From Phallusia mammillata (taxonomy: Eukaryota): 64,000 bases of DNA. Positions 2,176-27,525 of this stretch are shown in pieces; within the stretch, counting starts at the first letter, position 1; each line of letters begins with the position of its first letter. Location: NCBI GenBank assembly GCA_965637545.1, contig OZ281496.1:28706001-28770000 (forward strand), in the 5' to 3' direction. A program made the translations under genes and the position numbers. Below the pieces are notes generated by a model. It had not been told where the DNA came from. It saw nothing but the letters and a program-made list of their open reading frames with translations, and searched no databases.

Positions 2176-4175
<2,000 letters not shown>

Positions 4176-6905: not shown

Positions 6906-9900
6906 ATGGCTCGAATATTAACGATTGTTATCTTTCTGCTGCCGACATTGGGAAGCTACGTAATAACGCCACTGAATGGCTTCAAGGCCATAAGGACGTG
7001 CAAGACTTTTGACGAAGCGAAAGAACCAGAATGTGCAAGGTTTTGCATCACAAAGGAGAGGCCAGAGTTCAACAGGTCCGTGGCAGGTAGGTTTAAAACA
7101 TTTGGTAAATATTACATTAGAATGGTTTATGTGCTGGCTTGCTTGTTGTCTGTATTCTATCAACAAGGATTCTAAAATGGCACTCTGAATCAATCGACGA
7201 GTTCGAATTTTTTTGGCTTCTTGCAACAAATTGCGATCTTTTTAATTTCTTTGCGATGCATTATTTTATGTTGTGGCCTGTGTGTTCTATATTCGGTCAG
7301 CGTGGACGCTCAAAACGATAACGCTTTAAATTAATTCAGCGAGCTCACAAATATGTTTTGGCTTTTTTCAAGAAATTTAGATTTATTTGAGATGCACTAG
7401 GAAACAAACTAAGCCAATATCAACAAAAGTCAAGTTGCATAAACTTTAAGGAAACGCATTTTCAGCCATTACAAACGTTTGAGTCACACGTAGCATCTCT
7501 CCACAGAACCCACACAAAATCAAACACTGTTTGCTAAACTCAACAAATCTCATTATTGTTTCGGAGTAAAGTTCAATTAAATGATTTTCAAACTTCATGT
7601 GCATATTTGGACAAGTTTATCGGTTGTTTGCGCTGAACATGTAAAGCCAATAAAGATATTAGTCACGACCCACTGACATACATATGTTCATGCTTATAGT
7701 AGTGTGAATAACATCATTGATATTTTAAATGCATTTATAAGAAGCCAGCTAACCAATCAAGAAGAACGTATGATTTTTTGCAAACTACATGAAAGTAACA
7801 AAGATTGGTTTAAAAAAGTTTTTAGAAATTCTTGTGACATTAAATTCCATGGTTGCTAAGATATATTAAGATTTAATCTCAAGTTTGTGTGTTTACCTGT
7901 GTCCTAATAAGGGCGCAGCAAAAGTAATAATGACGCATACTAAGGCGTTCACCAAGATTCGCTTGTTATGGAATAAACACCTCCGGATAGATTTTCCGAT
8001 CGTTAATCGCAGTGATCTTCGCCGCAATCATTTGTCAACGTCACACACGCTACATTTGGCGGGAGTTTGACGGACGCTAATTGGACTGCCTGGAAAGACT
8101 ATCGAATAAGTTCACCAGCGAACCACTTTTACGTCAGCAAACCCAAAATTTATAATAGAGATCTTCAGCGAAGGGATCCGACGTCTACTTAAGGTTTACA
8201 TGTTCAATTTGAGCCACATTTAGACGTTTTAACTTTAAAGGTCTGGCGAACGACGCACAAAGTAGACCACATCTTGGCATCAGACATGGTGGTCTAAGTA
8301 TTAAACGGAGTGAGAGGTTTTATGTTGTTATGATTTGATCTATCCGTTATCGCCGCAATTTAATTGCATGGTTAGGCGCATGAATTAGCGGATGTGAGAA
8401 ACATTCAGTCCATTTTTTGAAACATTGCAAATTTTTGTTCAACGAATAACGGAGCCTGTTTGAGAAGTCAACCCTTCTGCACCATGGTAAAAACGTCAGA
8501 TAACATTTATATGATTAGTATGGTTAATTATATGGTTAATTTTTTTACATCATTTGACACGCACATGTTCTTCTTCATAACACTTGATTAATATCCTTGA
8601 AAAGTAGCCACAGCTTTACAACGTGAATGTTTTGAAAGTTCTGAATTGTACTTTTGAAAACAAAGTATGTTTTTGGTTTCAGCAAGCATACGGGTGCTAG
8701 CTCGATTGTTTCGCTACGAAATTGTTTCCTACGACAAGAACAGCGAAACATTATCGTGGAACACGAAAGGAGTTCAGGAAAGCTTAAAAAACAGCTTGGA
8801 CAACGTGACTGTCACCGCATACCACTGGAAACAGTAAGCAAGTAACAGAAATACGGAACTGTAATCCAATAGTTACGTATTTTAACTAACTCACATCATA
8901 ACATATGTACTGTAGTTTACTATTCCAAAAACCTTTGGTAAGGCTCATCAGCTGGCAATTATGCAGCTGTCTTGTGCATTTATGAGAGCAATGGAAACGG
9001 TCCTTGAAATCCTAATCAGTCGTTTGTGGTTTTGTCATCTATCCAACCGTTTTCCTCTAATCATGAACCACTCTTTTCAATAATGCTTGACCGCGTATAG
9101 TTTATTAACATCACCATGCAGTAAAGCAAACCTCCGAAGCGGTCGTTTGTTGTTTTAGTATTTGACGGTTTTCGTAGAACTTTAATCAACAGTTTGGACA
9201 ACGTACCACACCAAGCAACAGCGTGGGGCAAATAGGATTATAGTTTACGCTTGGTTTGATGTACGCATCATATCGACTGTCAAAGAACAGCTTTACTAGA
9301 AATCGTAGCAGACGCGCAAACAAGTGAAATAAGTCGAAACCAGCAAATGTTTCAGCATATTCGAGTTCTCATTTTGTTTCCACCTTCACACTAAAGCTTT
9401 TTCAAAACAACGATTTCGTTGTATTAACGTTATTCAGACTAGATGTAATACAAGTGAAACTTATGACTAATGTTTGACGTCAGTTGGCGGTCTTATTCAA
9501 AATTCTGTTGTGACTGGTTCCATCGCACACAAGTACAGCTGCAATGACGTCTTTGTGTGTCATTCGAATCTTTTTTCTCTTGACTGAAAAATCCAACATG
9601 CTTGATATGTAAAGATGGGTTGTTTGCACGTTTAGCGCTAAGGAAGGCCGACTGGAACTCACAGAGTCGGGACGGCCGATTATGAGTTGTTGTGGAGTTC
9701 CTCTGACGAAGAATCATTGCAAGGTTGCGTTTGATCACCCCGGTGAACTTTTCGTCTCAATGACCTTAAACAAGTTGAGGTTGGGTGCAGAAGTGAGCGC
9801 TTACAGATACGGTAAGTATTAGCATAACAGGGCATCATGTTTTCTCGTCCCCTGATTGGATACAGTTTCACACTGCTTGTGTGCTAATGAAAGTATCTAT

Positions 9901-12900
9901 TAGCTTCTAATGGTTTATCAACGTAAATAACATAATAGCCTATACCTGGCGTTTAAAAATCGCCAATGCGTAAAATGTGTTTTTCTACCTCGTGATTAGA
10001 GATATTTGATAACTTTATGTGTAGCCTAGTTGATGAACAAATCAACACATATGATCCAAATCAAAGTCAAATTGGTGCCATCATTGCATGCCGGATTTAA
10101 ATCATAACAACATTTAAATGCATGCAGCAGTCTGTTCTGCATTTACGATAAATAAAAAGAGCATTGTACTTCACAAGAAACCCAATCACAATTTTACCAT
10201 ATAGACCCCTAAAGACAGATAAACCAGAACATTTAAACGGTCAATTAGTGCAAACATGCAAATATTGGACATTGTCGACACAAAATAAGAACCAGTTGTT
10301 AATAAGATACATCAATATGTTTTAAGCACCACTCTGCTGGATGTTAAATAACGTATACGCACACAAAGTTTACGAAAAATTGCCCAACGGCGAAAAAGTT
10401 TATTTTAGAACCCGTTTCTTCGCAACCTAAACGCTTTAAAGTTGATCCAATTTTTTCCAGCTGAACGGGGAACAACTAATTATACAAACCACTGGGGTGT
10501 GTAGGGTGATAGGGGACCGGGGGCTGCAGTGAAGTGGGATGTTACCCCAACAGAAATTGGTGATCGGAAACGAGGCCCCTTGTGTAGATTACAAACAAAT
10601 GTTGCTGGGTGGCGTTTTGCTCATTATACATCAGTGATTCCTAAACGTTTAGGAAATGATTCATTTAATTTTTAAAATACCTCCAATCTTCTAAAAATGC
10701 CAATTGTTGCTCACCACGCATCAGTGATTCTCAAACGTTGAGCAAAATTTCAAAATACCTTGAAGGTTCTAAAATTGGCTAATTGTAGCCTTCTTGGTGA
10801 TTTCACAAGTCTTTAAAAGGGGTACGCATACAAAAAGGTTTGAAACCATGAACATAACGCAACGAGGAAGTGTGCGTGGGTATGAAGTAGTGGATTCGTG
10901 GTTGTTTTATTACTTGCACAATCGAAACGAAAGATTGCAACCTGATTGTCTGACTGTTAAATTTTTGAGGTAATTTTCGCCATTTAATATTTGACATACG
11001 ATACTGTTACACAGTTTCAACGTAGCAATTTCACGGTGATTATGCTCTTTTCTTAAACGTCAAAAGTGCCTCAATATAACATAAATCCGAAATTTGTTTC
11101 AAGTCCTCTACTTTCACTGCAACTACACAAATATATTTCTGTTTTAGTTTATTATCGTTACGAAACGATATGCCCTGAAATCAAACCCAGCGACAAGGAG
11201 GTCGCGTGCATCGTGCTGGATAAAAAGACGGGTGCAATAAAACAGAAGACCATGATCGTGGGATTCGCGAACACTGGAGGCCAAGATAGTCGATTTCAAA
11301 CAGAAGTAGAAATGTGTTCCTTTTCCTTGTCAGCAGGTAAAATCAGCCGTTGAATAGTTGGTTTTGCCTATAAACAGCCTCAGAAATGTAGTAGGAAAGA
11401 CGCTTGGTTTGTTATATACCTGAATGACAACAGTAAATGCCAAACGTTGTAATATTTGAGTTGTACAAGTTTTACATCAAACTTGTGGTTTAAGGTAGGC
11501 CACTTACGGCACATATATCCAAGCAGTTTATAGTCTTAATATTGTTCACGTAACAGACCGTGGGAGTAATACCAGACTTAAGGCGCCTTGTTGGGAGAAC
11601 TGTAATAATTCTGTGGTGTAAATATAAAAACAACTTTGCAAGGAGGATCTATAAAAAATATAGCCGGTATATTCCGTCAGTCGACCGCCACAACAACACT
11701 TCGTGGCAATAGGCTACAACTCGCCGTTTAGGCTACGCCAAGGAATACCAAACAAACTATAGCCACCAGACAAGTTAATTGATACAATAGCTCATGAGCA
11801 GGAATTTAACATTGACAAATGGGGTTCTGGGCTCTAATTATAACTACCTGACAAAAACTCCTCCAACAAACCTCTTTGGTGCATATATGGGCCGCATGTG
11901 ATGTTTTGGGTTGGTAAAACCTTCCGTAGAAGCGATCGAGCAGGTGCATATATGGAGCGTATGCAGAAAGTAAACAGTATGATAGTTAGGGGGAAACGCA
12001 AGAGTGAACATTGCTTCTTGCTCCTTAATCAATTTGAATGGGTAATGGTCTAAATCGGGTAAACCCGTACATGGAAAATCGGGTAAACACGATTAGGCTA
12101 CCTGCAAAGAAAGTTATCCATGTTCTGTGAAAAATTTGTTTTCCAAGCCGGCAGTCCTGTTTTTCATGAGAAAAGTGTAGACATTTTGTCAAAAAACGTG
12201 ATTATTAGCATCGTACTATTAATGTTTATGGACCAATTAAATATCAAAATATTTAATACTAAACGATATGTGATTCAACGCAAAATCAAATTTAATGAGC
12301 CTTTTCAGCATCATGAAAACACAACTGATTTTTTCCCTGTACAGTTGTAGAACTTGTTCAAATAAACCTGTGGAAATTTGAATTTGTTTCCATGTCTCAG
12401 TGCTAGACCAGGGTGTGGAAGACTTGTTTGACTTATACTGCTCTCTAGTGATTTCATTTACAGGAGGTTAAATCCTAATAGCCAATAAAGCTAAAACATA
12501 CCAAATTCATTTGACAGAAATCGCCAAACACGGGATTGGCGTGAAAAGGTTGGATGGTATTTTTGGAAAGAAACTGGTCGACGCAACAGACTATTTGCAA
12601 ACTCAGGAGCAAATCTGTCCAACTTGTAATTGTACCAAAGAGAAATTTAGTCCTGGAAATCCGACAACGTTCAAGCCGAAAGACCAAGCAAAATGTTTTC
12701 ACTTCGTAACAGGAGAAATTTTAAAACCGAAAGTTTACTGCCTTCTACCACCAGGTTAGTTTTCTATCAGAACTTTTTTATTGTGATAAGACCACAACTT
12801 TTAGACCTATAAGGTCTGGAGAGCCGTTGGATAGGAACACTAACCTATAAGGCTCATCTCTCGTCACCAACTGCACTGAGGTAGAAACAGTGTTCACTGT

Positions 12901-13677
12901 CTACAGCTTATCATTCACTGGCTTGATGCCTTTACATTTTTTTTTATTGTGGCTTGGTTTAAAATTAGTGATGCTTACAACCGTAATGTCACTTTATTAT
13001 TATAGTTATGTTTAAATATCTTCGTGATATAACCCTTGATTTTTCGCAAATGTAAGGAGCAACTTTTTTTGCATGTATGAAGACATGTTAATTGATGGTA
13101 TTTATTCCAGAGGTCAGAGCAGAAACGATTGGGGAGCAATATCAAAGTCACACAGAGTACAAACAAGACTACACAATTCCATGCCTGATAGGCGGATTGG
13201 CGCTAGTTTTCATGGCACTTCTGGCAGTTGTATGCTGGCGTAGACATGCCAAAAGGAAGCGTAAAGAGAAAAAACAACGTTGGTCCGAAACGGTAAGATC
13301 AAAGAAGTAGAGCCACATAAAAATGTGGTAATCAATAACACGTGCGTCAGTTCAGGCCATGTAAGGGTAAACCTGGACACTCATACGCAATATATTTCAG
13401 GTTCATCACAGAAACTATTGAAATTGTTAGAAACAAGCCAAAACTTATAACTGCAGAGATACACGATCGCGTATTGTTGTGTCCTGTGTTTTTTAAAAGC
13501 TTTATTTGTTTGTGAGCAGAAATGTTGGTATCAAACCGATCTTTTCTCGATTGTTTAGGTATAAAATCTAAAAACGTACTTCAAACAGTACAAATTCTTT
13601 TTTAGAATGAAAAACCCGATGTAAATGAAGACATCGCCTTGATTACAACGATGCATAGCAGAAATGAAACTCTTTAG
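6906..13677 (+). CDS. Uncharacterised Cys-rich type I membrane protein, short-tailed (receptor A), 395 aa. Exons 6906-7086, 8683-8833, 9636-9811, 11148-11336, 12518-12754, 13111-13292, 13606-13677
   Basis: All junctions GT-AG, phases 1-2-1-1-1-0, total 1188 nt open frame. Signal peptide MARILTIVIFLLPTLG, 14 ectodomain Cys, TM IPCLIGGLALVFMALLAVVCW followed by RRHAKRKRKEKK. Exon-by-exon similarity to receptor B supports the model; the terminal exon is the least certain. Confidence 0.85.
10629..10800. repeat. Degenerate tandem duplication of a unit of about 90 bp in intron 3 of receptor A
   Basis: catcagtgattc..aaacgtt..aaaatacct..ttctaaaa recurs at 10629 and 10719. Confidence 0.55.
12804..12908. 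repeat. Rearranged, inactivated copy of the hammerhead-containing repeat (family 1)
   Basis: On +: tctcgtcaccAACTGCA-CTGAGG-TA-GAAA-CAGTG-TT-CACTG-TC-TACAGCT (about 12859-12908) matches the 30664-30715 ribozyme but lacks stem II. Opposite-orientation stem-II fragments lie upstream: gacctataaggtc (12804) and cctataaggctcatc (12844). Confidence 0.7.
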
Positions 13678-16600
13678 CGCCAGACAGCGAGCAGTGTCAA
13701 AAACAACTTTCCGAATTTTGTAAATTGGCAATGCTGTGTTTTTCTTCGTCTCAAAAGGTTATCCCTAGATTTCTGAGCAGAGCTTGTATTGTACATTCTG
13801 GCGTGGCACGGTTTGGAAGAACGTTCGTTTTAATTCCACTGGTCTCTACCTTTTCAACAAAAGTCTCCATAACCCAATCGCGAAAGATTACGTTTAATGA
13901 AGAAAGCTGTTATTACCGGAGGTTTACTGCCGTAACCTACTTTACAACATTATCTACTAGATGTGTTGATGGCTTTCTATTACAAGAAACGAAGTAACGC
14001 CATTGCTTGCGAAACACAATGTTGTCGTAGTCATGTTTTGCTTTAACATCCTCCACAACGATATGCTCTAGCGTTTGCAGCGTATATAGAAGATATGTCA
14101 ATATGTTTGGCCTTCTGGTAAAATATCGGGTTTCACCAATTATATAGCCTAGGTACACTGCTTGCTGAAAACAAAATACAAGTAGTTAAAATGGTTTTGG
14201 CAGCAGACAGTCAATGTGAACAACTTTTGAGCAAACTTACCATGACAATGTATCACTTGTGTGTTGGTGTGCTTGTCTGAAAATATCATTAAATAAGAAC
14301 GTGAGATGTTGTTCCTTGTCACGTTTTGCAAAAGCAAGATCACAAATTTTATGTTTTTCAAACTTGATAAAATATGGTAAATACATCGTAATGCAGAGGT
14401 TCCAAATCGCTGTTGCCATCACGGTCGTTTCAACTGTATTCGTTCGTAAACACCGCGGGCTGTTGATTTCAATAATCGCTTGGAAAAACGCAATCCATCA
14501 CACCAAGACTGGCATAGTTAGCACATCCTATTATGTTACATGAGAAAATAAAAACAACAATTAAATTAGCGTTGGTGATTGGCTAAGGTGATCACAACAG
14601 GAGTCAGAAAAGATGACCATAGAGTCATTAGAAAACGCTTTTCGTGGTAGCCACCTGTCGTTTCCGACAAATCAAAACAGAAGCATTGCTGGCAGAAAAG
14701 CGGAAGCAGACCCAGGCAAGAACAAAAGATAAATTACCGCCACGAGCTGTTTACGGTCTGTATTGGGCAAATGACCAGAGTGACCATTTCCTATAAAACT
14801 CAAGTAGCCCCAAGTCATCAATAAGAAAAACAGACAGGTTGTAAAACTAAACTCCATTTATTGAAAATATGGACGGAAAAAATTACCTGATTTTTAGACC
14901 TTGAGAATAAAACTGTGTCACAAATCCAAATTAATAACCAGATGGCTAATAGACGTTCCCCAATCCGTAAAAATAAACGGCAAGGAGCATTACAGTGCCT
15001 GGTTCTGTATTGGACAATGACGGAAGTGACACATTCATGTACCTAAATTAGGCAACAAATCATAATCACACGTCATCGATTTTCTTCAGACGGAAATTGC
15101 TTTTACCTTTGTTGCCCGGTTCAAAATTATTTCAACATGATTATGCAACCAAATACGGTTGCCTAGAACACGTAGGAGGAAAAAGCTTCAAAGAAAATAG
15201 CTGTATCTCAAGCGGCCTCGTCAAAAGTTTTAAGTGGATATTGCCAAACAAATTGAAGTTTAGGATCAAAAAGATAAATGGTGATACTTACATTATGAAG
15301 TGAAATCACACTATTCCAAATTGCCAACATGTACATGATTCGACTTTTCCTCTACCCGAAATGTAAAATAGACAAAAGGTAAAAACAAACGCTTAACAGT
15401 CTCCTGTTCTGCATTAGCAATGACCAAAGTGGCATTTTCCTTCAACTTAGCTTCCAAGTCTGCATTTAGAATCACGCTATTATTAGTTAGTTAATACCAA
15501 ATGGCTACAACCTCGGTCTTAACCTTTAACAGGACAGGTATATAAAATACTTAAAATTACTGCAACGAAATGATGTGAGACATAACCGCATTTTTTGACC
15601 TTCAGGAAAAATATAAATACAAACACATACCAAGAAAAATGACTACAAGGCAATTGGCTGGACATTTCTGCACCAAAACAATAAGTTCAAACGTCTGTAA
15701 GTTAGGCTTGTGATAGCATTTCCGACACATTTGTTTAATGCAGTTTTCCTGACTAGTGTAGACGGATGTCTTGTAAATGCAAATTCATAATCTGCAAAAA
15801 AGTGTCACTTCTGCAAGTACTGATATAACATCGGTGGCACACAACTCATTGAGAAACTCAATATGCGAAAACTTCTGTCAAAATTTTGTTATAAGACAGT
15901 GGTTGCCGTGTGCCACGAACAATTTTCAGTGGACCACAGAACGATTTCAACTTTGTGTATAATATGATAAATAGGCTGCCATTTTTGCTTGTGACAGAAT
16001 GGAAGTATTTTCAATGTTCGGCACTTTGTGGTGAGCCACGAAGCTACTTAGGTCATAACTAATCTAGGCCAGGAAGTACAAAAAAATGGAAACCACTGTC
16101 TTAATACATTACTGAATAGTGAAGGTAAAACTGACAACTCTCTTCTCGTTGTAGTGTCATGCAATCTTAATTGCTGGAATCTTCATCTATCTAAACAGTT
16201 TGTTTTGGTAAGCATTTTGCAAACACGGATATTTATACAGTATTTTAACAAAACAAAACCGAGTCACATCAAAATCTGCGATCAGAAGACACACTTTCGA
16301 AACGAACATGCAAAGTAAAAGCTAAATTCGCTAGGAGTGCACATGAGCTGTTGGAAGGGAAAAACTTTGGGTTTCATTTGTGACTGTGATGTGCTCAAAA
16401 CAGTCAGTGACAGGCTTTCAAGTGTGACAAATTGAACGCAAAAGTGTTTTTCAGATGGAAATCGCGGGCGGTCACGCTTTTGCAGTGGTGCAGAACGAAA
16501 GGACACGTGATTAATGAAACCAAATGGAGATTTTGGGAAAAAGAACACCTGAACAGGAAACGTAGGCTGCGCAAAAATCACAAAGCAAGATGAGTAGCAG

Positions 16601-16834
16601 CCAAGCGTTTCTGGCTGCATGTGATTTATACAAACAAGAGTGTTTGCTCACACGTTGTGGTTTTATCATCAGACAGATAATAGTTTATAGTGATTTTGTT
16701 GTTACAATTTTCCGCTTCGAGCGAACGTCAAATAAAGAATGACATGAAACTGCAAACAAACATTGATAATTACCGATGTTTTAACAAATACCGTTTTCGC
16801 ATTATAAAAGCAAAGAGTCATTACATGTTAATTA

Positions 16835-16945
16835 AGCCGCAGACAGAGCATAATGTTACGACGTATGAGGTATCATCAGTGCAGCTGGTGACAAGACATT
16901 GACCGCACAGGCTATGGTAGCCACAATGCGGCACTGCACCAGCCC
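16835..16945 (-). repeat. Degenerate copy of the hammerhead-containing repeat (family 1)
   Basis: Minus strand reads AGCTGCA-CTGATGA-TACCTCATACGTC-GTAA-CATTATGCTCTG-TC-TGCGGCT. Flanking similarity to 30716-30773 continues (ggtgac..ccgca..gtagcca..cggcact). Confidence 0.7.
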
Positions 16946-17848
16946 ATGTGGTCAATGTCTAATCACCAGGTGCATTGATGAGACTTTGAAAGCGCAATAC
17001 TGTGTACTATCTGCAGCTTAGAACTTTATACACAAGTTTAGCAAGGGCTAAGTACACTAACTTTAACCCAAATAATGTTCGGTTTTGCATGCAAATTCGT
17101 TAGAGCGATGCTTCATTGCAGTGCCACAGAGCAAGTATACAACAGTGCCATGGGAGAATGCAATGGTCAACCGATGCCTCGTTGCCTTCTGTACACAAGG
17201 GTGGCGCGTAGGAGATATGGTTGCTTCTGGCAAAAGGGCGAAACGGAAAAGAGCGCGTACAACAGCTGCATGATGATAATAATCTCAATGTACATTTTAC
17301 ATTAAAACAAAGGCCATTGCGACTTTTGCAACTAGTACAAAGCCAAGCATGTCATGCAATAAAACAAAAGCATTAAAACGCCGCAATGACGGAGCTAAGA
17401 AACTAAACTACATTTCGGTTCACATAAGTTTAAATGGCACCCAAACACCAACTAACCGCCAAACCGTTTTGTTTGTTTGTTTTAACTTATTGGGTAGAAA
17501 TAAACAGGTTCCGCTAATGGATAACGTTGTGGGCAAGGTGCAGCATTTGGGAAATCAAAGCAGACGAATTGAAAATAGTTACAATATGGACGTGTACACA
17601 ATAACTGGTCCAAAACAGAAAGTAGAATTTAAATCTTGCTTTAATTTCATCGACTGAAAACAAAAGCCGATCAAAATAAGCATTAGGCATTCAAAGTTCG
17701 GCTTAAAAGGCCAAGCTTGCCAAATGCCGCTTTTCGAAGCGGTGTGGTGGTCACCGTCTTAAATTTGTGAGCTTAACAATCATACAACCTCGGGTTTTAT
17801 ATACTTTCGGTCATCAGGTTGTGTCCGCACCAGGATTTTCCAGTGGAG

Positions 17849-17854
17849 TTTATT
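17849..17854 (-). promoter_or_regulatory. Possible polyadenylation signal of receptor B
   Basis: AATAAA on the minus strand about 77 nt downstream of the stop at 17931. Confidence 0.4.
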
Positions 17855-17930
17855 TCATATTTCGCAGAGTCCAAGTAATATTTTGCGAGCCGAAAATTCT
17901 TTTTTTCTCAACAAATTGACACTTTCAGTG

Positions 17931-20438
17931 TCAATGAGCAAGTAGACTATAATCAGGCAAAGCTTCGCTCTGCGACAAATGACCAACGGCCGAATCCGTA
18001 CTAATGTGTTTTGATTTGGCGAAAAACATGTTATGGATCATTTTCTCAGATCCAGGTGGTGGTCCGACCGCAGTGCCCATCTTAAGTTCATCGAACACAT
18101 CGTCCCCGAACGACAACCGATCGTCAGGTTTGCCGAAATCCGAGGGCTCACTTCCCGCGTCAAATGGAGAGGAATTCTCGAAGCTCGGCATATCTGTTTC
18201 GTTCTCGCTGTTACAGCCGGCGGAACCGCGGCCAGTATCTTCTGAAGTCTCGGAATGGCGACTGGACGGTTCAAATCGGATTGAGTGATCAATGTCTGCA
18301 ATGCCGGCGCTTGTAAGACCTGATGACACACCGCTGCTGGAGCACATGCTTTCAGGAATGTAGTTGTCAGTGAGGCCACTGGAGTCGTCAGTAAAAGAGC
18401 TTGATTGTACCTCCGGCTTGTCGAGATAGCCTTCAACAGTTGAAGGAACAAAGTCAACAGAATCCGTACGATTTTCTAAAAAAACAGGTTTGAATAACCT
18501 TCTGTTTAAAGACAAGCGTTTTATGCAACAGCTTGCATGACACATCAAGTGTTTTAACAAACAGATTTCAAAGATGTCCCGTCAAAAAAACAAACCAGCC
18601 AACGAGTCGGTTTAAAAATGATAATCTGTAGTGAAAGATTCAAATATCACCAGCGCGAATAGCCTGCATGCTTTAACCAGGTTTTAAATATGCAAGTTAG
18701 AAGAAAAGAAAGTTTTTTTGACCAAACAATTCCGTGTCTAACGTTCCTAAAATTTGAAAGCACTGGTAATATCTAAGACACACCCCGAATTGTGAATGCA
18801 CTTGCTCTTACTGCTTCTCTTTATCTTGGTGAAAATTTTCGACAAACGCTTGCAAAAGACCATTAGGCTTAAAAATATAAAAGCCAAAAATGAGTGGGCC
18901 CAAAAGAAGTTGAATGCTAAGTTTACGCTAAGTTTAACGCATCATTTCTTTCCAATCTTTCTCCTGGTGCATTTATTCGTTTCATGCTATTTGGTCATCC
19001 TGATTTAACAGACGCTCACACACTGTCATTATCCCATGCTGTTCATAAATATTTGCGTGCATGTAACAGATTTTGATTTCTGCTGCCGTTTTATTGACAT
19101 TTAGCCTCTTTCGTTCGCTTTTCCTCTTTTGTTTACTATTATTATCGACTACCCTTTACCTGAAAATACATTTATTTCTCGTATGGTGACACAACAAAGG
19201 ACAGTTTTCAGTTTCCAGACTGTCGTCTGATTGTCGTAAAATAATAAATAAAAAACTGCCTGTGCAAAAAAAAGAAGTTGAATAAGGTTTCATATTGTCC
19301 ATTCGACAGACGCCGTTATTAATAGTTTCAGCGCACCTGGCCATGTAACTAAAATTTGATAAGCATCGACAGTTGTACCTCGTCTGTAGTAATTTGGGGA
19401 TATCGCGTTGCATTCGACAAAACAAAGTGAAAATGGGTATTGAAGGCATTTGAGTAGGGATAAAGGAAAATTCTTGAAACCTTTGTTGATAAATTGTGTT
19501 CACGAGAGATATTTCATGTCAATTGTGTTCAAAGAGCTGATCGATGTAAAATGCCATTACCAAACGCAAATAATCTTTTGTTAGACTTGACAGTTTTTTT
19601 TGCCCTGTGTTCGGCTTACAATTTATACGCATATGTTTATTGACGGGGGAATTCCGAAAGCAAAGTGTGTTCGATTGAATGTGGAGTGACGAATATTTGT
19701 GATACTAAACAAAATACTATAGTTGTTTTTCAAGAACTTATTCGTTTATTTGCTGTATAGGCTACTGTTACTAGCCAACCAGAAGCTTACCTAGTTGGGG
19801 ACGATTACCGATGTTGACATCAGGAACATCTACTTCGTGTCCAAACTCATTTTGAAGAAGAAAGTGTTTTTCTTTATCGGGCACTAAATACAAAAATCCA
19901 ATTGTCAATTTTATCAAAGTAGGCCACGGGAAAGAACATGTAAGTGCGGGGAAATAATAGAAACGGGAAGCAAAAACAATGAATAATACCCCACGCTGAC
20001 GTCAAAACAAGGTGAAATTAAGTGATGGTAAAACAAGGTGGGTTAAAATAGCCCACGACTCCGTCACCAAATGTCAGTTGTCCTGACAATGGGAAATGAC
20101 ATTTCACCCAACCCTGACAAACACACAAATTCTACATACACCAAATTGGGTATTACGCAGTGTGGGTCATTATTCAGATTAGGTGTAGCTAACTGGAATG
20201 GAACTGCTACTAATGTGTTGTCAACAGAGCGTTAATTAAAATGCCAACATTGTAGCACTATAAAGGAGTCGGTCAATAATCAGGCTTGAAAATGACCTTG
20301 ATCCCATTCGCAGCTGAAGTTAGAATTGAAATGTTGACGCTAAAATTTCACGGTAGGGCTTTTGTTTCCAAACACTAGCATTAGCGAAGATAATATTTGT
20401 CGCCTGTTAAAACGTATCAACCTGATAGATAAAAACTA

Positions 20439-20473
<35 letters not shown>

Positions 20474-23400
20474 CTCTACCAAGTCAGGTTCATCGTCTGG
20501 GATATGTGACTGATTGATAAATGACATTTTGCTCATCAGTTTTGCACGAATTTTAATCTGCTTGCCCAAATTGTATGGAGTCAAACAATAGGACACAACG
20601 AAACATCGTATTATTTTATAATTTTAGAACAGATTTTGGTCGACCTGATTAAACACCCTTATTGGGCGGATGTAATATCTAGGGCGTGCATATAGGATAT
20701 GAGATTTTCGGAGCGCATTTTTGTTCTTGACCACCCGTTGCAGTAGTTGATATTTGAGCTAGCAATTCGCGTGGTCTCACAGGTGACAGTTTATCTTGAC
20801 AAGGAAGCACTGTGTGGTACCCGCTGCTGCACGCGACTTCCTTTCCCGTTATTCGACAAGGCGTTGCATGGCCGAATCCGATACCTCATACCCCTTTCTC
20901 CAATCTATGTGGTCTGCTGCGACATTATGAATAAACAACAGGCATTGTTACGCTTTGGAGAAGGACGCCCGTACTATTGTTTGGATCTCGATGCGGTTTT
21001 TGCCATTTTCCTGACCACCAATGCAACCGCTATGCATTAAAGGAGTAGAAGGAGAAAAGACACTGGATTTATACCGCTAAATTAACCATTTTTCTTAAAT
21101 TAAAATTAAATTGCACCAGTTTTCATAAGGTGAGTAATATGTCGCAATGACAATTTCTCGACAATGTTAATGCACGGTACACGTTAGGCCTTACGGAAAC
21201 AGTGCTCTATTATGTTAATGGAATTTATACGAGAGTGAAGGGTTTTGTTGTTTGCGCAGTATAAATATTGTGATATGGGTAACGGATTTCGTTAATATCT
21301 AAAACCTACTTGGTGTGTAACTACAAAAGTATTAGTGACGTTTTTCTTACGATTTACCGGTGATGACAACCCCATTTACCAAAAACAAATCGTGTTACTG
21401 AAGCTACAAAGTCATTTCTCTCATGCTGTTTGCCAAGGTAACTTTCTCTCAAGTTATCGACGGTTCATGCTACAGTTCAGGTACGACTTCCTGACACCAA
21501 AAGCAGTAGAATCTCATTGACGCGCGACAATTTTGCGTGAGGCGCAGACGCCGGGGAACCACGTGTGTGTTGTAATACTGCCCATAAAGTAATCATTCTT
21601 AAATGGGCGACAAGTGGATTTTGCGAATATACGGTTTTACAGCAATCGCCCTTATAAAATTCTCTTAAGCATTGTACGTGTGTCATACGGAAATAAAATA
21701 ATCTTTAAAATCACCTATACCGCTTATGTTAAGGGTTAAGACTATGCGGACCTATTTTTTCACTGATGATTCTAAGCACGACTGTTGGATATTATACTGC
21801 ATGATTATAGTGCATATTTCTTACAGTCGAGCATTTGATTGCGTCCTGAAAAAAAAATATTAATGCGGCTAACCGCATAAAAACATTAGCAAATTGGTTA
21901 TGCAATTAACCGAATTCGTCTTTACTTTAAGTGGAAGGTTTAGGTCGCAGCCGAGAATACCAACCTAATTTATCAGCAGTGCACAAATTAAGCGGTTCGG
22001 CTTCTTCCTTATACTCATCACTGGTGACAAAATTGCCACCGCTTCTGTTGCCAGCCAACGTTTTTTCCATGTCCATCTGCAAATAAATTACCACAATGAC
22101 AACATTGTAATTCCATCGCTTGCATAGTGAACCTCAGTTAAACCGGATGCAGTTATTCCGAATCTTCGCCTAATTCCGACAAAACTTGAGATACAGATGT
22201 AACGCCAGTATAACTACTTTTATTATTTATGACAATTTTTAAAATATTTGTCAAAAAGCTAGTAATAATTATTGACCGCAAATTTTATCGTGCAAAGCAG
22301 TATAATATACTACTTGGGATGACGTCTAAAAGGACAATGCTAAAAGAATAAACAACTTGGATACGAAATAGATGCACTTGGAAAAAAAGCCGCCTATCAT
22401 AAGGAACTAAATCTCGTGGTATATGAAATGTATCAACTAACCTGCGGATTTGTAAGAATAAATAGACTTACCACTGAAGGTGGCATTTTTGTAACGGTTC
22501 CTATAAACTTTCGAAATTTTCCGGATACGTTGTAGGTGCCAAATATCAGTATCAAAAGGAGAATGACACCACCAATTATGCAGAGAAATATCACTAAAAC
22601 CAAATCTAGAGAATCCGCTTCAACTTTGTCTTTTTCAGGCGCAGCAACAGTTACTGCATAGAAAAGAGGAGATGTTGTATGTTAAAACTTTGCAAATACA
22701 ACAACTAAATACGAATTTTTTTAGTATGAATTTTTTTAAACACTTCCTAAGTTTCAGTCTCAAGTCGGGAACAAGTACTAAATTCTTTTCTACGAAAAAT
22801 CAATGGCCCCGGGCATTTTTGCAAGTAAACGTGGACACTTAACGAAGCAAACTGGGGTACTGCCTTAAACATTAGAGCAATAGGTTATGTTTAAACACAA
22901 ACGGTGAGTTACGCCTCATCGGGACGAAAATTAGGGCCCACACTCGAAAGTAAAAGGGCGAAAACATTCAAACTTTTTAAAGCAACCTAAAAGTAATGTC
23001 AACCATCGTTCCATTACCGCATAAATGTAAAGTATCGAGTTAGGCCCAAATCAGGTCCGTTTCAATAATTACCTAGAACCGGTTTGGTTATCGCTGGCTT
23101 AAGAACAAAGCGAAAACGTAGCACTTGATCAGTAGAGCACGAAAACGGCGTATTTAACATGACATTATCAGGCTTTTTAGTTTCCCGTTAATAGTGGCGT
23201 TGTAGGTGTTGCAGAGCAGGTTGTTTGTGTGCCTTAGTGTCACATGTGTTTTTTTCGGATCCATTCTGGTATTTTTTACTTCGATTTATTTCCTGCTTAT
23301 AGAACTGATGAAGCCATGTTGTATGCAGAGACAGATTTAAGAGTGCTGTAACTTACAGATGCGATATATACAGCACAAGCCATCTATTTTTTTACCATTT

Positions 23401-26400
23401 CCTGGCATGCAATACTGCTCCATTTGTGCATCAGACTTTCGCGAAGTGGCCTGGAAACACAAGAGGTGTCCAGGCTTGGTGGTCTCATTAAGATTAGGAT
23501 CAAGACTGATATTCTTAATAGAGCAGTTTCGTTCGCCAGATTTTTCCCAATACTTGGTTACCGACCATACTTGTCGATTAAAGAACATGCTATAGAGCCC
23601 ATCTGTCAGTTTTGTTCCATTCCTTTCAACATTATCTACAAATATAAAACAGTAAATGTCTAAGATCGTCAATACACAAGTTGTCTTATCTGAAAGATCT
23701 CGTCAATACACAAGTTGTCTTATCTGAAAGAAGCTCCCCAATGCGGCCCACGAACACTCAACAACAATTGTAGAATTTTGTCAGATTTTTATCTAACTAT
23801 AATATATTTTTTCTACTTTTCATAGTGAAAGCTATGATTTAAACAGACATTTACAGAAATTAAATTTATAAATAAAAATTCATATGTTATAAACAGAAAC
23901 GATAGTAATTAAACCGTTCCTCAAGGCGTTAAGTTTCAGTCAAGGGCGTACAACCTGCAGCCGTACGGCCACATGTTCATTAAAATATATGTGCTGGCGG
24001 CCGTGATGTAATCAAAACTCCTTTGCCAAATATTTTGATTTTCAAACTGCTCTAAACAGATTTTATATCACTGAAAAGAGTACAATGTTACCAGCTTAGG
24101 AGCCATGTGCGTCAGACTTTTTTGTAGACCTATTGTGTGCAAACAATGGAAAAAACGTCACAATATAGATTATGACGTCATAAACAGTTAAAACTGATCT
24201 TCACAGTTGGAAATTAATCTGGGCTTTTGGGGCGTCAATATATGGCATATATATAATTATGATGTAAACCTATTTCTGTAATTTTAAAACAAAAACCAGC
24301 AGGTAATAGGTGACTGGTGGTGAAATTAGGATCTACAATGCGGCCGTCGTAGCGAAAATGTTGTTTAAGTGTATAAAACTAGATTAAAAATCACATGCGG
24401 CCCTCGGCATAATTTCCAAACTGCAATGTGGCCCCCGAACCCCACGAGTTTGACACCCCTGGTATAGATATCTATTAGAGATGTCGTTAAACGTCTTCAG
24501 ATTCAAGAACGGAAGACATCGAAGCAGCATGGTAAAAACAAAGTGAAAAAAGTGAAAACATTTACTCAAGCCAGTTGCATATAAACGATCTGTTTTAAAA
24601 AAAGACCATCATTGGAGTTACAAATTTAATCTCGAAAATAATTGACAAAACTGTCAACACAATATTGTGCAGGTTTTCGATACCCAACTTCCAGACATGC
24701 TACCCACTCATCTCAGCATAAAACGGCCCTCCAAAAACACAGAAAGCGATTAAAATTCGAGATCCGCATAAAATATAAATGAATACAGTGTGACTTCGCT
24801 CTAGGACCAGAATGGCGAAAGTGAGAAACAACGACCTATTTTGGGAAAAGTTTAACATTAACAGTGTTATTTACCTTGACGAAGGCCACCTGTATAGGAC
24901 GTCGAAACGTCGGATTAAAAATACTTGACAGAAGAGCTCTATAAATGTACGAGTGAAAAAAATTGACAAAACAACCTCGTTTTAATGCGAAAATGGATGC
25001 TGAAGGTACATGGTCACTTTATGAGTGCGAACGTACCCAAAGCTGATCCAAAACATTGTTGGGGTCAAAGTGATCTGTAGTCTTTTAGTAAGATCCCACA
25101 ACTTAGAGCAGTGGTTCTTAACCTTTTTTATAACGGCCGAACCCCTGCCATATTCTTCAGCCTTTGATCGAACCCTAAAGTTACATCCAAGGTTTTTAAC
25201 CCATTTTGTTTTGCGGGTCGTAATTAGTTTTTGTTTCAACGTGATGTGGCAACAGTTACTGTTTGTCATTTTTTTGTCAACAAAGAGCACGCGCACAGTG
25301 CTCTTTGTTACGTCAAAAAAGAAAAGAAAACCTTATAGTGCAGGGGTGCACAACATTTTGCAAGGATGGCCGCATTGCAGATTCTTATTTCACCAACGTC
25401 CGCCATTTACCCGCTTTTTTTGTTTCAAAATACTTGGTTTATGTCATATATATACCATCTAAATAGCGCCCAAAAAGCCCAGAATATCTAGCTTGGTGCA
25501 CAGCTTGGAGTTCAGTCTTAAGTGTTTATGATGTCATAATCTATATTGTGATGCTTGTGGTACCGGTTTTGTTCGCATTGTTTGCACACAATAGGCGTAA
25601 AAAAAGTGTGACGCATATGGTTATTAGGCTGGTAATATTCTTTTTAGTACCAAAAAAACTATTTAGAGCAGTTTAAAAATCAAAATATTTAGCAAACGAG
25701 TTTTATTTACGTCACATATATATAGTTTTATTTACGCCTGTACATATATTTTAATAAACATGTTCACGGCCGCACAAACTCGACTTGTGCACCCCTGCCT
25801 TAGTGTAAGCTTCGAGCGTTTTGATATTTGGCAAATAGAAATGCCATTTTTAGCGACTATAGACCCTAAAGTTTGATGAAAACGAATATTTGTATTGTAC
25901 TTCAAAAAGACCTTCGTCGAACCCCTGGGGTTCGATCGAACCCCGGTTAAGAACCACTGACTTAGAGTGTTAGTTTCAACTTTTAAAAAATACTCTTACG
26001 CGTTTTATACGACACACATTTTACCAATTTGCGGCAACAACTTGGCCTGCAGCCATAAAAAAATCCCTTCAGCAGAAAAAAATGTGAGACTTAAATGGCG
26101 AAGTACGGCCAAACATAAAAGTCTGTAAAATCTTTCCATTCTGTCTACGATCATCGATTAAACCGTGTTTTAGGTTAAGTGATAGTATTGATAAAGCAGC
26201 AGTGTTTCTGAACCAAAGTTAGTGACAAAAACTGTTCCGCAAACAAACTTACGTTTCGGCAATTGGTAGACACAGAATTTTCCTATTTGTCCTTTCACTA
26301 CGTCCTTGGCGTATTCGGCTGCGCTAGTAACACCAAGTATACCTTGCAAGGCGTTGACCTCAATCGCACCAGTGCTTATGTTAACAAATAAACACAGCTG

Positions 26401-27525
26401 AATGGTGTCGTTTTTCCACCAGCAGCTCTTGTAAGGTTTTTGCTCTGAAAACGCAATTATTTTTGTTGAAAACAAATACAAGGTTAGATGTGTATTCGGA
26501 CGGCGAAATCTGTTTTGTGACTACAGTAAAAACGACACACACAGGGGACAGAACAAAATTGGTTGCCTTTAAAAAAACTGCTGTAAAATCAAAAATTGTT
26601 GTCACAGTTTGCCTAGCAGCAACATTTTATGTATTTATTTCAAGTTTAAGTAAGCGGGTGTACAAGTATAACAGGAACTTAATGACAGGACACAAAAAAT
26701 AGTCGTGCATTGTAGCTTTCCGGCAAACGCTTGAATGTATTGTTATAAACAAACTTACCAAGTTGTGCGACATGATACCGATAACCAATTCTCGTAACAT
26801 TACGCGTTAGACCGATGTAAAGTCTGCCGGCGTCCTTCACGGAAACTGAACAGTTTCTGGCTAGAATTGAAACGCCACAACACGTACGAATGGGCGTTCC
26901 AATAGCGTTTTCTCTGCACAAAATAATAATCTTTGTGATTTTGCAATATTTGTATACAAATAGGCTGTTTTCCATTTGCACGAAAAACCTACTCGGACAG
27001 AAAAAAAGTGGTGACCGTAATCCGCGATTGACGATTAGTTCCGTTCCTTTTAGGTGTCCATATCATCATTTCATTGGTTTTGTTGTAGTAGAAATCATAT
27101 AGGCGAACGGCCCTGGCTAATCTCTTAAAGTCGTCTAAACAAAACGTGAGTGAGTTTAGTGCTAGGTACCAAAAGTTTCCAAAGGTTCCTTCCAATCCAA
27201 AACTTCATGTCCATCTTACGCTTATGTATCCCGATATATTACAAAGAAATTTAACCGGGTTGTTTTGAACTTAGCAATATAACATTAACGGGATCGAATT
27301 CGAAACGACAGTGAAAAGTATCGACCTACTTTAACGCTTACAATCAAGGGCTTTGTTCTTACCTATGCTTATAGGATTTTTTTTATCTATAGACAAATCA
27401 TAGTGGCAGTAGTCCATGCATAAGTCACCAGTGACATTTCCTGGGCATTTTTTGACTTGACTGTACGATATTACTAAATCAAATACAATGAACAAGATGA
27501 AAATCCGATAACTTAAATCCAACAT
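17931..27525 (-). CDS. Uncharacterised Cys-rich type I membrane protein, long-tailed (receptor B), 576 aa. Exons (minus) 27525-27363, 27134-26993, 26913-26759, 26444-26253, 23635-23396, 22653-22472, 22076-21965, 18475-17931
   Basis: All junctions GT-AG, phases 1-2-1-1-1-0-1, total 1731 nt open frame. Signal peptide MLDLSYRIFILFIVFDLVISYS, 12 ectodomain Cys, many N-glycosylation sequons (NVT, NKT, NGT, NCS, NDT, NIS, NET), TM LVLVIFLCIIGGVILLLILIFG, and an acidic Ser-rich tail with four Tyr. The TM exon is 182 nt, as in receptor A. Confidence 0.88.
20438..20464. repeat. Poly(A) tract, about 27 nt
   Basis: Uninterrupted A run in the last intron of receptor B. Confidence 0.9.
23666..23730. repeat. 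34-bp tandem duplication
   Basis: tcgtcaatacacaagttgtcttatctgaaag occurs at 23666 and 23700. Confidence 0.85.
23941..24461. mobile_element. hAT-type MITE, older copy; inverted relative of 25341-25797
   Basis: Imperfect ends caagggcgtacaa ... tttgacacccctg. About 330 bp of its interior matches the reverse complement of 25341-25797 (e.g. aaactgctctaaa, cctattgtgtgcaaacaatg, cacaatatagattatga). Confidence 0.7.
24871..24918 (+). repeat. Degenerate minimal hammerhead motif (family 2, Penelope-like type)
   Basis: cc-TTGACGA-AGGCCACCTGTATAGGACGTC-GAAA-CGTC-GG; similar to 62149-62197 but with the C3 position changed. Confidence 0.5.
25109..25959. mobile_element. hAT-type MITE (outer element) interrupted by a second MITE
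   Basis: 15-bp TIRs cagtggttcttaacc / ggttaagaaccactg; perfect 8-bp TSD acttagag at 25101-25108 and 25960-25967. Confidence 0.9.
25341..25797. mobile_element. hAT-type MITE nested inside 25109-25959
   Basis: 13-bp TIRs caggggtgcacaa / ttgtgcacccctg; flanks ccttatagtg / ccttagtg (TSD with a 2-nt indel). Confidence 0.85.

Follow-up and report, generated by a model that had tools for sequence, protein, structure and literature searches.

Class II cytokine receptors are divided into long and short chains, and their genes are often clustered. In vertebrates and lampreys they act as heterodimers, as for example IL-10R1/IL-10R2, IFNAR2/IFNAR1, IFN-lambdaR1/IL-10R2 and lamprey CRFB7/CRFB14. The underlying genes follow a common layout, in which a signal exon precedes a pair of fibronectin type III (FnIII) domains, each carried by two exons (1-2-1-0-1), and then the transmembrane segment, with conserved intron phases 1-2-1-0-1-0 (Nat Commun 2022, PMC8863823; bioRxiv 10.64898/2026.05.30.728932). 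Here we describe two neighbouring genes, termed A and B, from the tunicate Phallusia mammillata, whose exon layout resembles that of these receptors and whose sequences matched no named family. They lie on opposite strands within a window of 64,000 nucleotides (assembly GCA_965637545.1, contig OZ281496.1, positions 28,706,001 to 28,770,000 of the forward strand), and all coordinates below are those of the window.

Other described receptors also bear on this pair. Tissue factor (F3), a non-signalling class II member, combines a short cytoplasmic tail with the D200-type gene layout, D200 denoting an ectodomain built of two FnIII domains. Paired immune receptors of the KIR, LILR and SIRP type are encoded as long- and short-tailed paralogs side by side. 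For Ciona, the literature searched lists only two class I receptors, a gp130-like protein and CLF-3 (PMC1963337), and a single JAK; it lists no class II receptor for any tunicate.

Two transcribed paralogs arranged tail to tail

The products of genes A and B are type I membrane proteins and paralogs of each other, A with a short tail and B with a long one; the genes lie tail to tail, their stop codons 4.25 kb apart. An earlier annotation made from the DNA letters alone (hereafter the sequence-only reading) had proposed just such a pair, and its structural claims were largely borne out. All of the peptide strings it quoted were found in the open reading frames to which it had assigned them, the first six introns of both genes have phases 1-2-1-1-1-0, and the exon containing the transmembrane helix measures 182 nucleotides in each. 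All introns of both models are GT-AG and all frames are open. Likewise, the proposed exon-by-exon correspondence holds, as exon boundaries fall at matching columns of a global A/B alignment. Overall similarity is low: BLASTP reports 23% identity over 302 residues (E 6e-14), the ectodomains are about 26% identical in the global alignment, and identity by exon ranges from 16 to 40%, with exon 3 the highest (40%). Nevertheless, the A/B score of 58.2 bits far exceeds that of 200 shuffles of the B ectodomain (16.1 +/- 2.2, maximum 25.8; z about 19). No third paralog was found within the window.

Both proteins begin with a signal-like hydrophobic segment and contain a single transmembrane helix. Twelve ectodomain cysteines, the number given by the sequence-only reading, are common to A and B, three each in exons 1, 3, 4 and 5; those of exon 1 are spaced C-x10-C-x3-C in A and C-x8-C-x3-C in B. 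For the first cysteine of exon 4, the pairing goes by position alone, since the global alignment leaves it unaligned. An additional shared cysteine lies in the transmembrane helices, within a conserved C-[LI]-I-G-G motif. Because the number of cysteines per exon is odd, disulfides must cross exon boundaries, so that not the single exon but the group of exons 1-3 or of exons 4-5 forms the structural unit. The ectodomain of roughly 300 residues thus comprises two modules, with six common cysteines apiece. Without its signal exon, module 1 spans 109 residues in A and 99 in B, the size of one FnIII domain. An hhalign comparison of module 1 with module 2 gave no signal of internal duplication. The ectodomains carry 3 N-glycosylation sequons in A and 12 in B.

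The cytoplasmic tails are markedly unequal. That of A has 41 residues and is basic, strongly so next to the membrane, and the RNA joint 13292>13606 confirms it. The tail of B had been described as about 240 residues with four tyrosines; the tyrosines stand (Tyr380, 443, 465 and 602), while the length rises to about 270 residues with an exon found in RNA. A further tyrosine, Tyr338, sits at the membrane edge. The B tail has a net charge of -25; Ser (14%), Asp and Glu abound in it. Its last exon, the 180 residues of the tail that the Pfam scan covered, gave no match to any family up to E 10, including the SEFIR and TIR domains of IL-17 and Toll-IL-1 type receptors. In its charge, its serine content and the lack of a Pfam domain in the 180 residues scanned, the tail resembles those of cytokine receptors, which are disordered and serve in docking.

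Evidence for transcription comes from contigs of three small RNA runs from the same organism (X1, X2 and X3), read out over 12500-18499; such contigs demonstrate presence, not absence. A DNA-type run (X4) spans the region colinearly, without the splice joints seen in the RNA runs. Both genes are present in X1 and X2, and X3 contains B only. A and B are both transcribed, in the same RNA runs, and we take them to be functional paralogs.

For gene A, spliced contigs confirm three junctions, all GT..AG: exon 4 to exon 5, 12754>13111 and 13292>13606. The X1 contig of 1681 nucleotides shows the last 30 nucleotides of exon 4 at its exon-5 edge, and the 675 nucleotides that it holds upstream of exon 5 agree with a start about 20 nucleotides into the coding sequence. 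The 3′ untranslated region (UTR) reaches at least to 14189 in an RNA contig, and a poly(A) signal follows at 14288. Between 13659 and 14067 the RNA contigs show 5 differences from the window in the gene A 3′ UTR, and at 18297 in gene B they differ by one synonymous change (GCA>GCG, Ala); these differences are ordinary allelic polymorphism. Within intron 5 of gene A, unrelated contigs of all four runs match a 37-nucleotide stretch (12879-12915) whose depth in the DNA-type run is raised, which marks it as a second short high-copy repeat besides the one described below.

For gene B, contigs of all three RNA runs cover the last exon, and the acceptor at 18475 is seen in RNA. Contigs of X1 and X3 break at this acceptor, and their loose end at 18478 continues as 19794-19823, which therefore identifies a 93-nucleotide exon 8. 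Thus RNA upheld three junctions in gene A and, in gene B, the last one; it also added an exon that was absent from the sequence-only model. An alternative exon 8 of 55 nucleotides, spliced straight to exon 6, would likewise preserve the frame.

Beyond the gene B stop codon, X1 and X3 contigs tile most of the 1.5 kb between 16416 and 17933, extending past poly(A) signals at 17849 and 17640 (minus strand). This RNA represents either a long alternative 3′ UTR of gene B or separate intergenic transcripts. Between the two genes also lies an inverted repeat of 44 nucleotides (16870-16984), 82% complementary, with a 27-nucleotide loop. Its left arm has a word depth of about 54,600 in the DNA-type run as compared to about 340 nearby, and many contigs of the RNA runs contain it. 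The repeat is probably an element of very high copy number that resembles a miniature inverted-repeat transposable element (MITE).

Table 1. Exons and other located features of genes A and B
Feature	Position	Strand	Content	Phase	Support
A, total	6906-13677	+	7 coding exons, 395 aa; stop codon 13675-13677
A exon 1	6906-7086	+	ATG, signal peptide, N-terminal segment C-x10-C-x3-C	donor 1	not read directly; length fits 1681-nt RNA contig of X1
A exon 2	8683-8833	+	conserved LAR..R, W, VTVT	donor 2	splice sites, frame, alignment
A exon 3	9636-9811	+	G.PI..CCGV, C-x8-C, YRY	donor 1	splice sites, frame
A exon 4	11148-11336	+	3 Cys, TGAI motif	1-1	3′ end joined to 12518 in RNA contig
A exon 5	12518-12754	+	DG, NC, KP, CF, YC	1-1	RNA joint 12754>13111 in X1 and X2
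A exon 6	13111-13292	+	stalk, transmembrane helix, polybasic start of tail; 182 nt	donor 0	RNA joints both sides
A transmembrane helix	13173-13238	+	contains CLIGG
A exon 7, coding part	13606-13677	+	23 aa and stop		RNA joint 13292>13606
B, total	27525-17931	-	9 coding exons, 607 aa; stop codon 17931-17933
B exon 1	27525-27363	-	ATG at 27525, signal peptide, C-x8-C-x3-C	donor 1	splice sites, frame
B exon 2	27134-26993	-		donor 2	splice sites, frame
B exon 3	26913-26759	-		donor 1	splice sites, frame
B exon 4	26444-26253	-		1-1	splice sites, frame
B exon 5	23635-23396	-		1-1	splice sites, frame
B exon 6	22653-22472	-	stalk, transmembrane helix, juxtamembrane segment ending MPPSV; 182 nt	donor 0
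B transmembrane helix	22606-22535	-	contains CIIGG
B exon 7	22076-21965	-	cytoplasmic, 112 nt	0 to 1	splice sites and frame only, by inference
B exon 8	19883-19791	-	cytoplasmic, 93 nt	1-1	RNA; acceptor at 19883 inferred
B exon 9	18475-17931	-	181 codons of acidic Ser-rich tail, and stop		RNA contigs X1, X2, X3

Comparison with known receptor families

The closest likeness of the pair is to class II cytokine receptors. As in those genes, a signal exon is followed by a two-module ectodomain on 2 + 2 exons, with phases 1-2-1-x-1-0. The topology is type I, with a signal peptide, a transmembrane helix in an exon of its own ending in phase 0, and cytoplasmic exons after it. Comparison of 1-2-1-1-1-0 with the class II pattern 1-2-1-0-1-0 shows that five of the six phases agree, including the unusual phase-2 split of the roughly 100-residue module 1 and the phase-0 end of the transmembrane exon. 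Similarly, one chain of the pair, here B, bears a long, apparently disordered tail with tyrosines. Some short motifs resemble class II strand motifs as well: exon 2 has W-x-P-K after an N-x-x-x-L/I stretch, exon 3 has C-x8-C, and P-x5-C-F...C stands just ahead of the stalk; we take these resemblances as leads, not as tests. Proline motifs occur in gene B as MPPSV at the end of the transmembrane exon and a single PLNL in exon 7, both too short to serve as evidence.

Other receptors fit less well. Gene A shares with tissue factor a short tail on a D200-type layout, but tissue factor has two disulfides only and lacks an N-terminal extension, and no sequence match links the two. The class I receptors of Ciona share with A and B a tunicate host, type I topology and a layout in two modules, which in the Ciona receptors make up the cytokine-binding region; unlike them, A and B have no extra Ig or FnIII domains, and the class I motifs WSxWS (module 2) and C-x(9-10)-C-x-W (module 1) are absent from both sequences.

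The sequence-only reading had been unable to place the ectodomain in a named family, and family searches led to the same result. All of these searches used single exon pieces, each only half a domain, so that a blank is weak evidence. Nine exon pieces compared with Pfam at E up to 10 gave no relevant match, and profiles of exons 2, 3, 4 and 5 found none among all PDB sequences. Exons 5 and 3 met with low recognition in the ESM Atlas, with no usable lead, and a scan of metagenome contigs with the exon-3 profile yielded 242 pattern matches, none of which was confirmed. An exhaustive hidden Markov model search of 1.84 billion representative proteins with a joint A and B exon-5 profile returned two hits only; both were long proteins of several domains in which many short stretches matched, and they were judged spurious. 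The score of A and B against this profile would be about 140 bits, yet no such match appeared. Therefore, the proteins of this genome are absent from that library, as is any relative down to roughly 35% identity in exon 5, the detection reach of the profile; more distant relatives may be present in it. AlphaFold models of single exons had a mean confidence (pLDDT) of 42 for exon 5 and 55 for exon 2, too poor for a fold search; these low-confidence pieces place beta-hairpins at the conserved Trp of exon 2 and at the CF...YC pair of exon 5. Judged by sequence, A and B are lineage-restricted orphans. To call them an undescribed receptor system may go too far, should their fold prove to be that of a divergent cytokine-receptor D200 module.

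Competing readings of the pair

Because the layout of A and B matches that of D200 cytokine-receptor genes, above all class II, we read the pair as a very divergent long/short system of cytokine-receptor type, a reading that we hold tentatively and at somewhat less than an even chance. B would be the signalling chain, acting through its acidic, serine-rich tail of about 270 residues with four tyrosines. A, whose basic tail has 41 residues, would serve as an accessory or affinity-converting chain or as a decoy; since this tail is shorter than those of known JAK-binding short chains, the role of accessory or decoy may suit A better than that of a second signaller. The two chains would bind one and the same secreted ligand, and might do so as a heteromer, with the conserved C-[LI]-I-G-G face of their transmembrane helices aiding its formation. 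Fold, heteromer, ligand and kinase coupling are what we infer for A and B. The sequence-only reading had drawn the analogy with heterodimeric cytokine receptors, which now gains one independent point, the agreement of five of six intron phases; the analogy is compatible with the data and unproven. In its narrower form, in which the pair would supply the long (R1-type) and the short (R2-type) chain of a genuine tunicate heterodimer of the class II cytokine receptor type, we consider the proposal doubtful.

A number of observations weigh against a cytokine-receptor-type pair. The intron inside module 2 is in phase 1, not 0, and module 2 has 142 residues, about 40 more than an FnIII domain. Twelve ectodomain cysteines and a 40-residue, cysteine-bearing N-terminal segment are atypical, class II receptors differing in both respects. 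In Pfam, even at E 10, the exon pieces (each only half a domain) matched none of Tissue_fac (PF01108), Interfer-bind (PF09294) and fn3, and among the PDB sequences they matched no solved receptor chain. No class I Box1, YxxQ or WSxWS is present in A or B, a clear JAK-binding motif is lacking as well, and the tail of the short chain is just 41 residues long, below the length of known JAK-binding short chains. X3 has gene B without gene A. Furthermore, the host is an invertebrate chordate, in which the class II family is unreported, and a Foldseek screen of a tunicate (Styela) proteome found no interferon-fold cytokine (10.64898/2026.05.30.728932).

Almost equally likely is a rival reading in which the two proteins come from a rapidly evolving orphan family of type I membrane glycoproteins in tunicates, with a fold unrelated to that of cytokine receptors, the match of intron phases being coincidental. 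Such proteins might act, alone or as homomers, in adhesion, gamete recognition, allorecognition or pathogen binding, and their adjacency would reflect a local inverted duplication. The unusual cysteine pattern, the failure of any sequence method to name a family, and the adjoining ficolin cluster are all in keeping with this, as are the divergence of the ectodomains to about 26% identity, the 12 ectodomain N-glycosylation sites of B compared with 3 in A, and the one phase of six that differs from class II receptors. However, agreement at the other five phases, including the phase-2 split, is unexpected for Ig-type or most other receptor genes. In addition, the long, disordered, tyrosine-bearing tail suggests signalling beyond adhesion, and retention of the transmembrane motif across paralogs only about 26% identical suggests a common membrane partner.

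Another proposal of the sequence-only reading, that of paired activating and inhibitory immune receptors, did not survive. Here B would inhibit through immunoreceptor tyrosine-based inhibitory motifs (ITIMs), and A would activate through an adaptor bearing an immunoreceptor tyrosine-based activation motif (ITAM), held by a charged transmembrane residue. Such a system would account for the tail asymmetry with a shared ectodomain, and the neighbourhood does contain immune genes. However, a regular-expression scan of both tails found no ITIM, ITAM, immunoreceptor tyrosine-based switch motif (ITSM) or YxxQ in that of B, and the transmembrane helix of A has no charged residue (no Lys, Arg or Asp). 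Unlike KIR, LILR and SIRP receptors, the exon pieces also gave no Ig-domain match, and paired receptors are usually near-identical in their ectodomains, whereas those of A and B share merely about 26% identity. These motif tests of the tails and transmembrane sequences led us to reject the paired-receptor reading, which we now regard as very improbable.

Finally, it is hardly credible that the exon chains are artefactual or the genes decaying pseudogenes: exons 1-3 of A and 1-7 of B were not read base by base in RNA, but every frame is open, every intron is GT-AG, spliced contigs occur in three RNA runs and not in the one DNA run, the 1681-nucleotide contig has the length expected of nearly the whole A coding sequence, and the sole coding variant examined is synonymous.

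Genomic neighbourhood and significance

The pair had been placed beside a ficolin cluster, and a ficolin neighbour is indeed recognizable: Pfam Fibrinogen_C matches at 3729-4172 on the plus strand (E 3e-23). This is the last exon of a ficolin/fibrinogen-like gene and ends 2.7 kb upstream of gene A. The closest database relatives of the exon are ENA/JGI metagenome fragments just 57-59% identical to it, and therefore the proteins of this genome seem to be absent from the public protein collections that were searched.

A 2026 preprint extends class II-type receptors to lancelets (10.64898/2026.05.30.728932). Tunicates are the sister group of vertebrates, and nothing of the kind has been reported from them. 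An expressed long/short pair with a class II layout and no recognizable sequence is thus a concrete candidate for the question of where these receptors originated. If the fold proves to be different, A and B would still represent an unannotated, transcribed receptor-like family beside an innate-immune lectin cluster, a result of more local interest. If instead the narrower reading, that of a true class II-type heterodimer, is correct, the receptor architecture of the interferon/IL-10 type would be older than the vertebrates on the tunicate side as well, having diverged so far that sequence searches no longer detect it, and its presence would imply a still unrecognized helical cytokine signalling through the single tunicate JAK.

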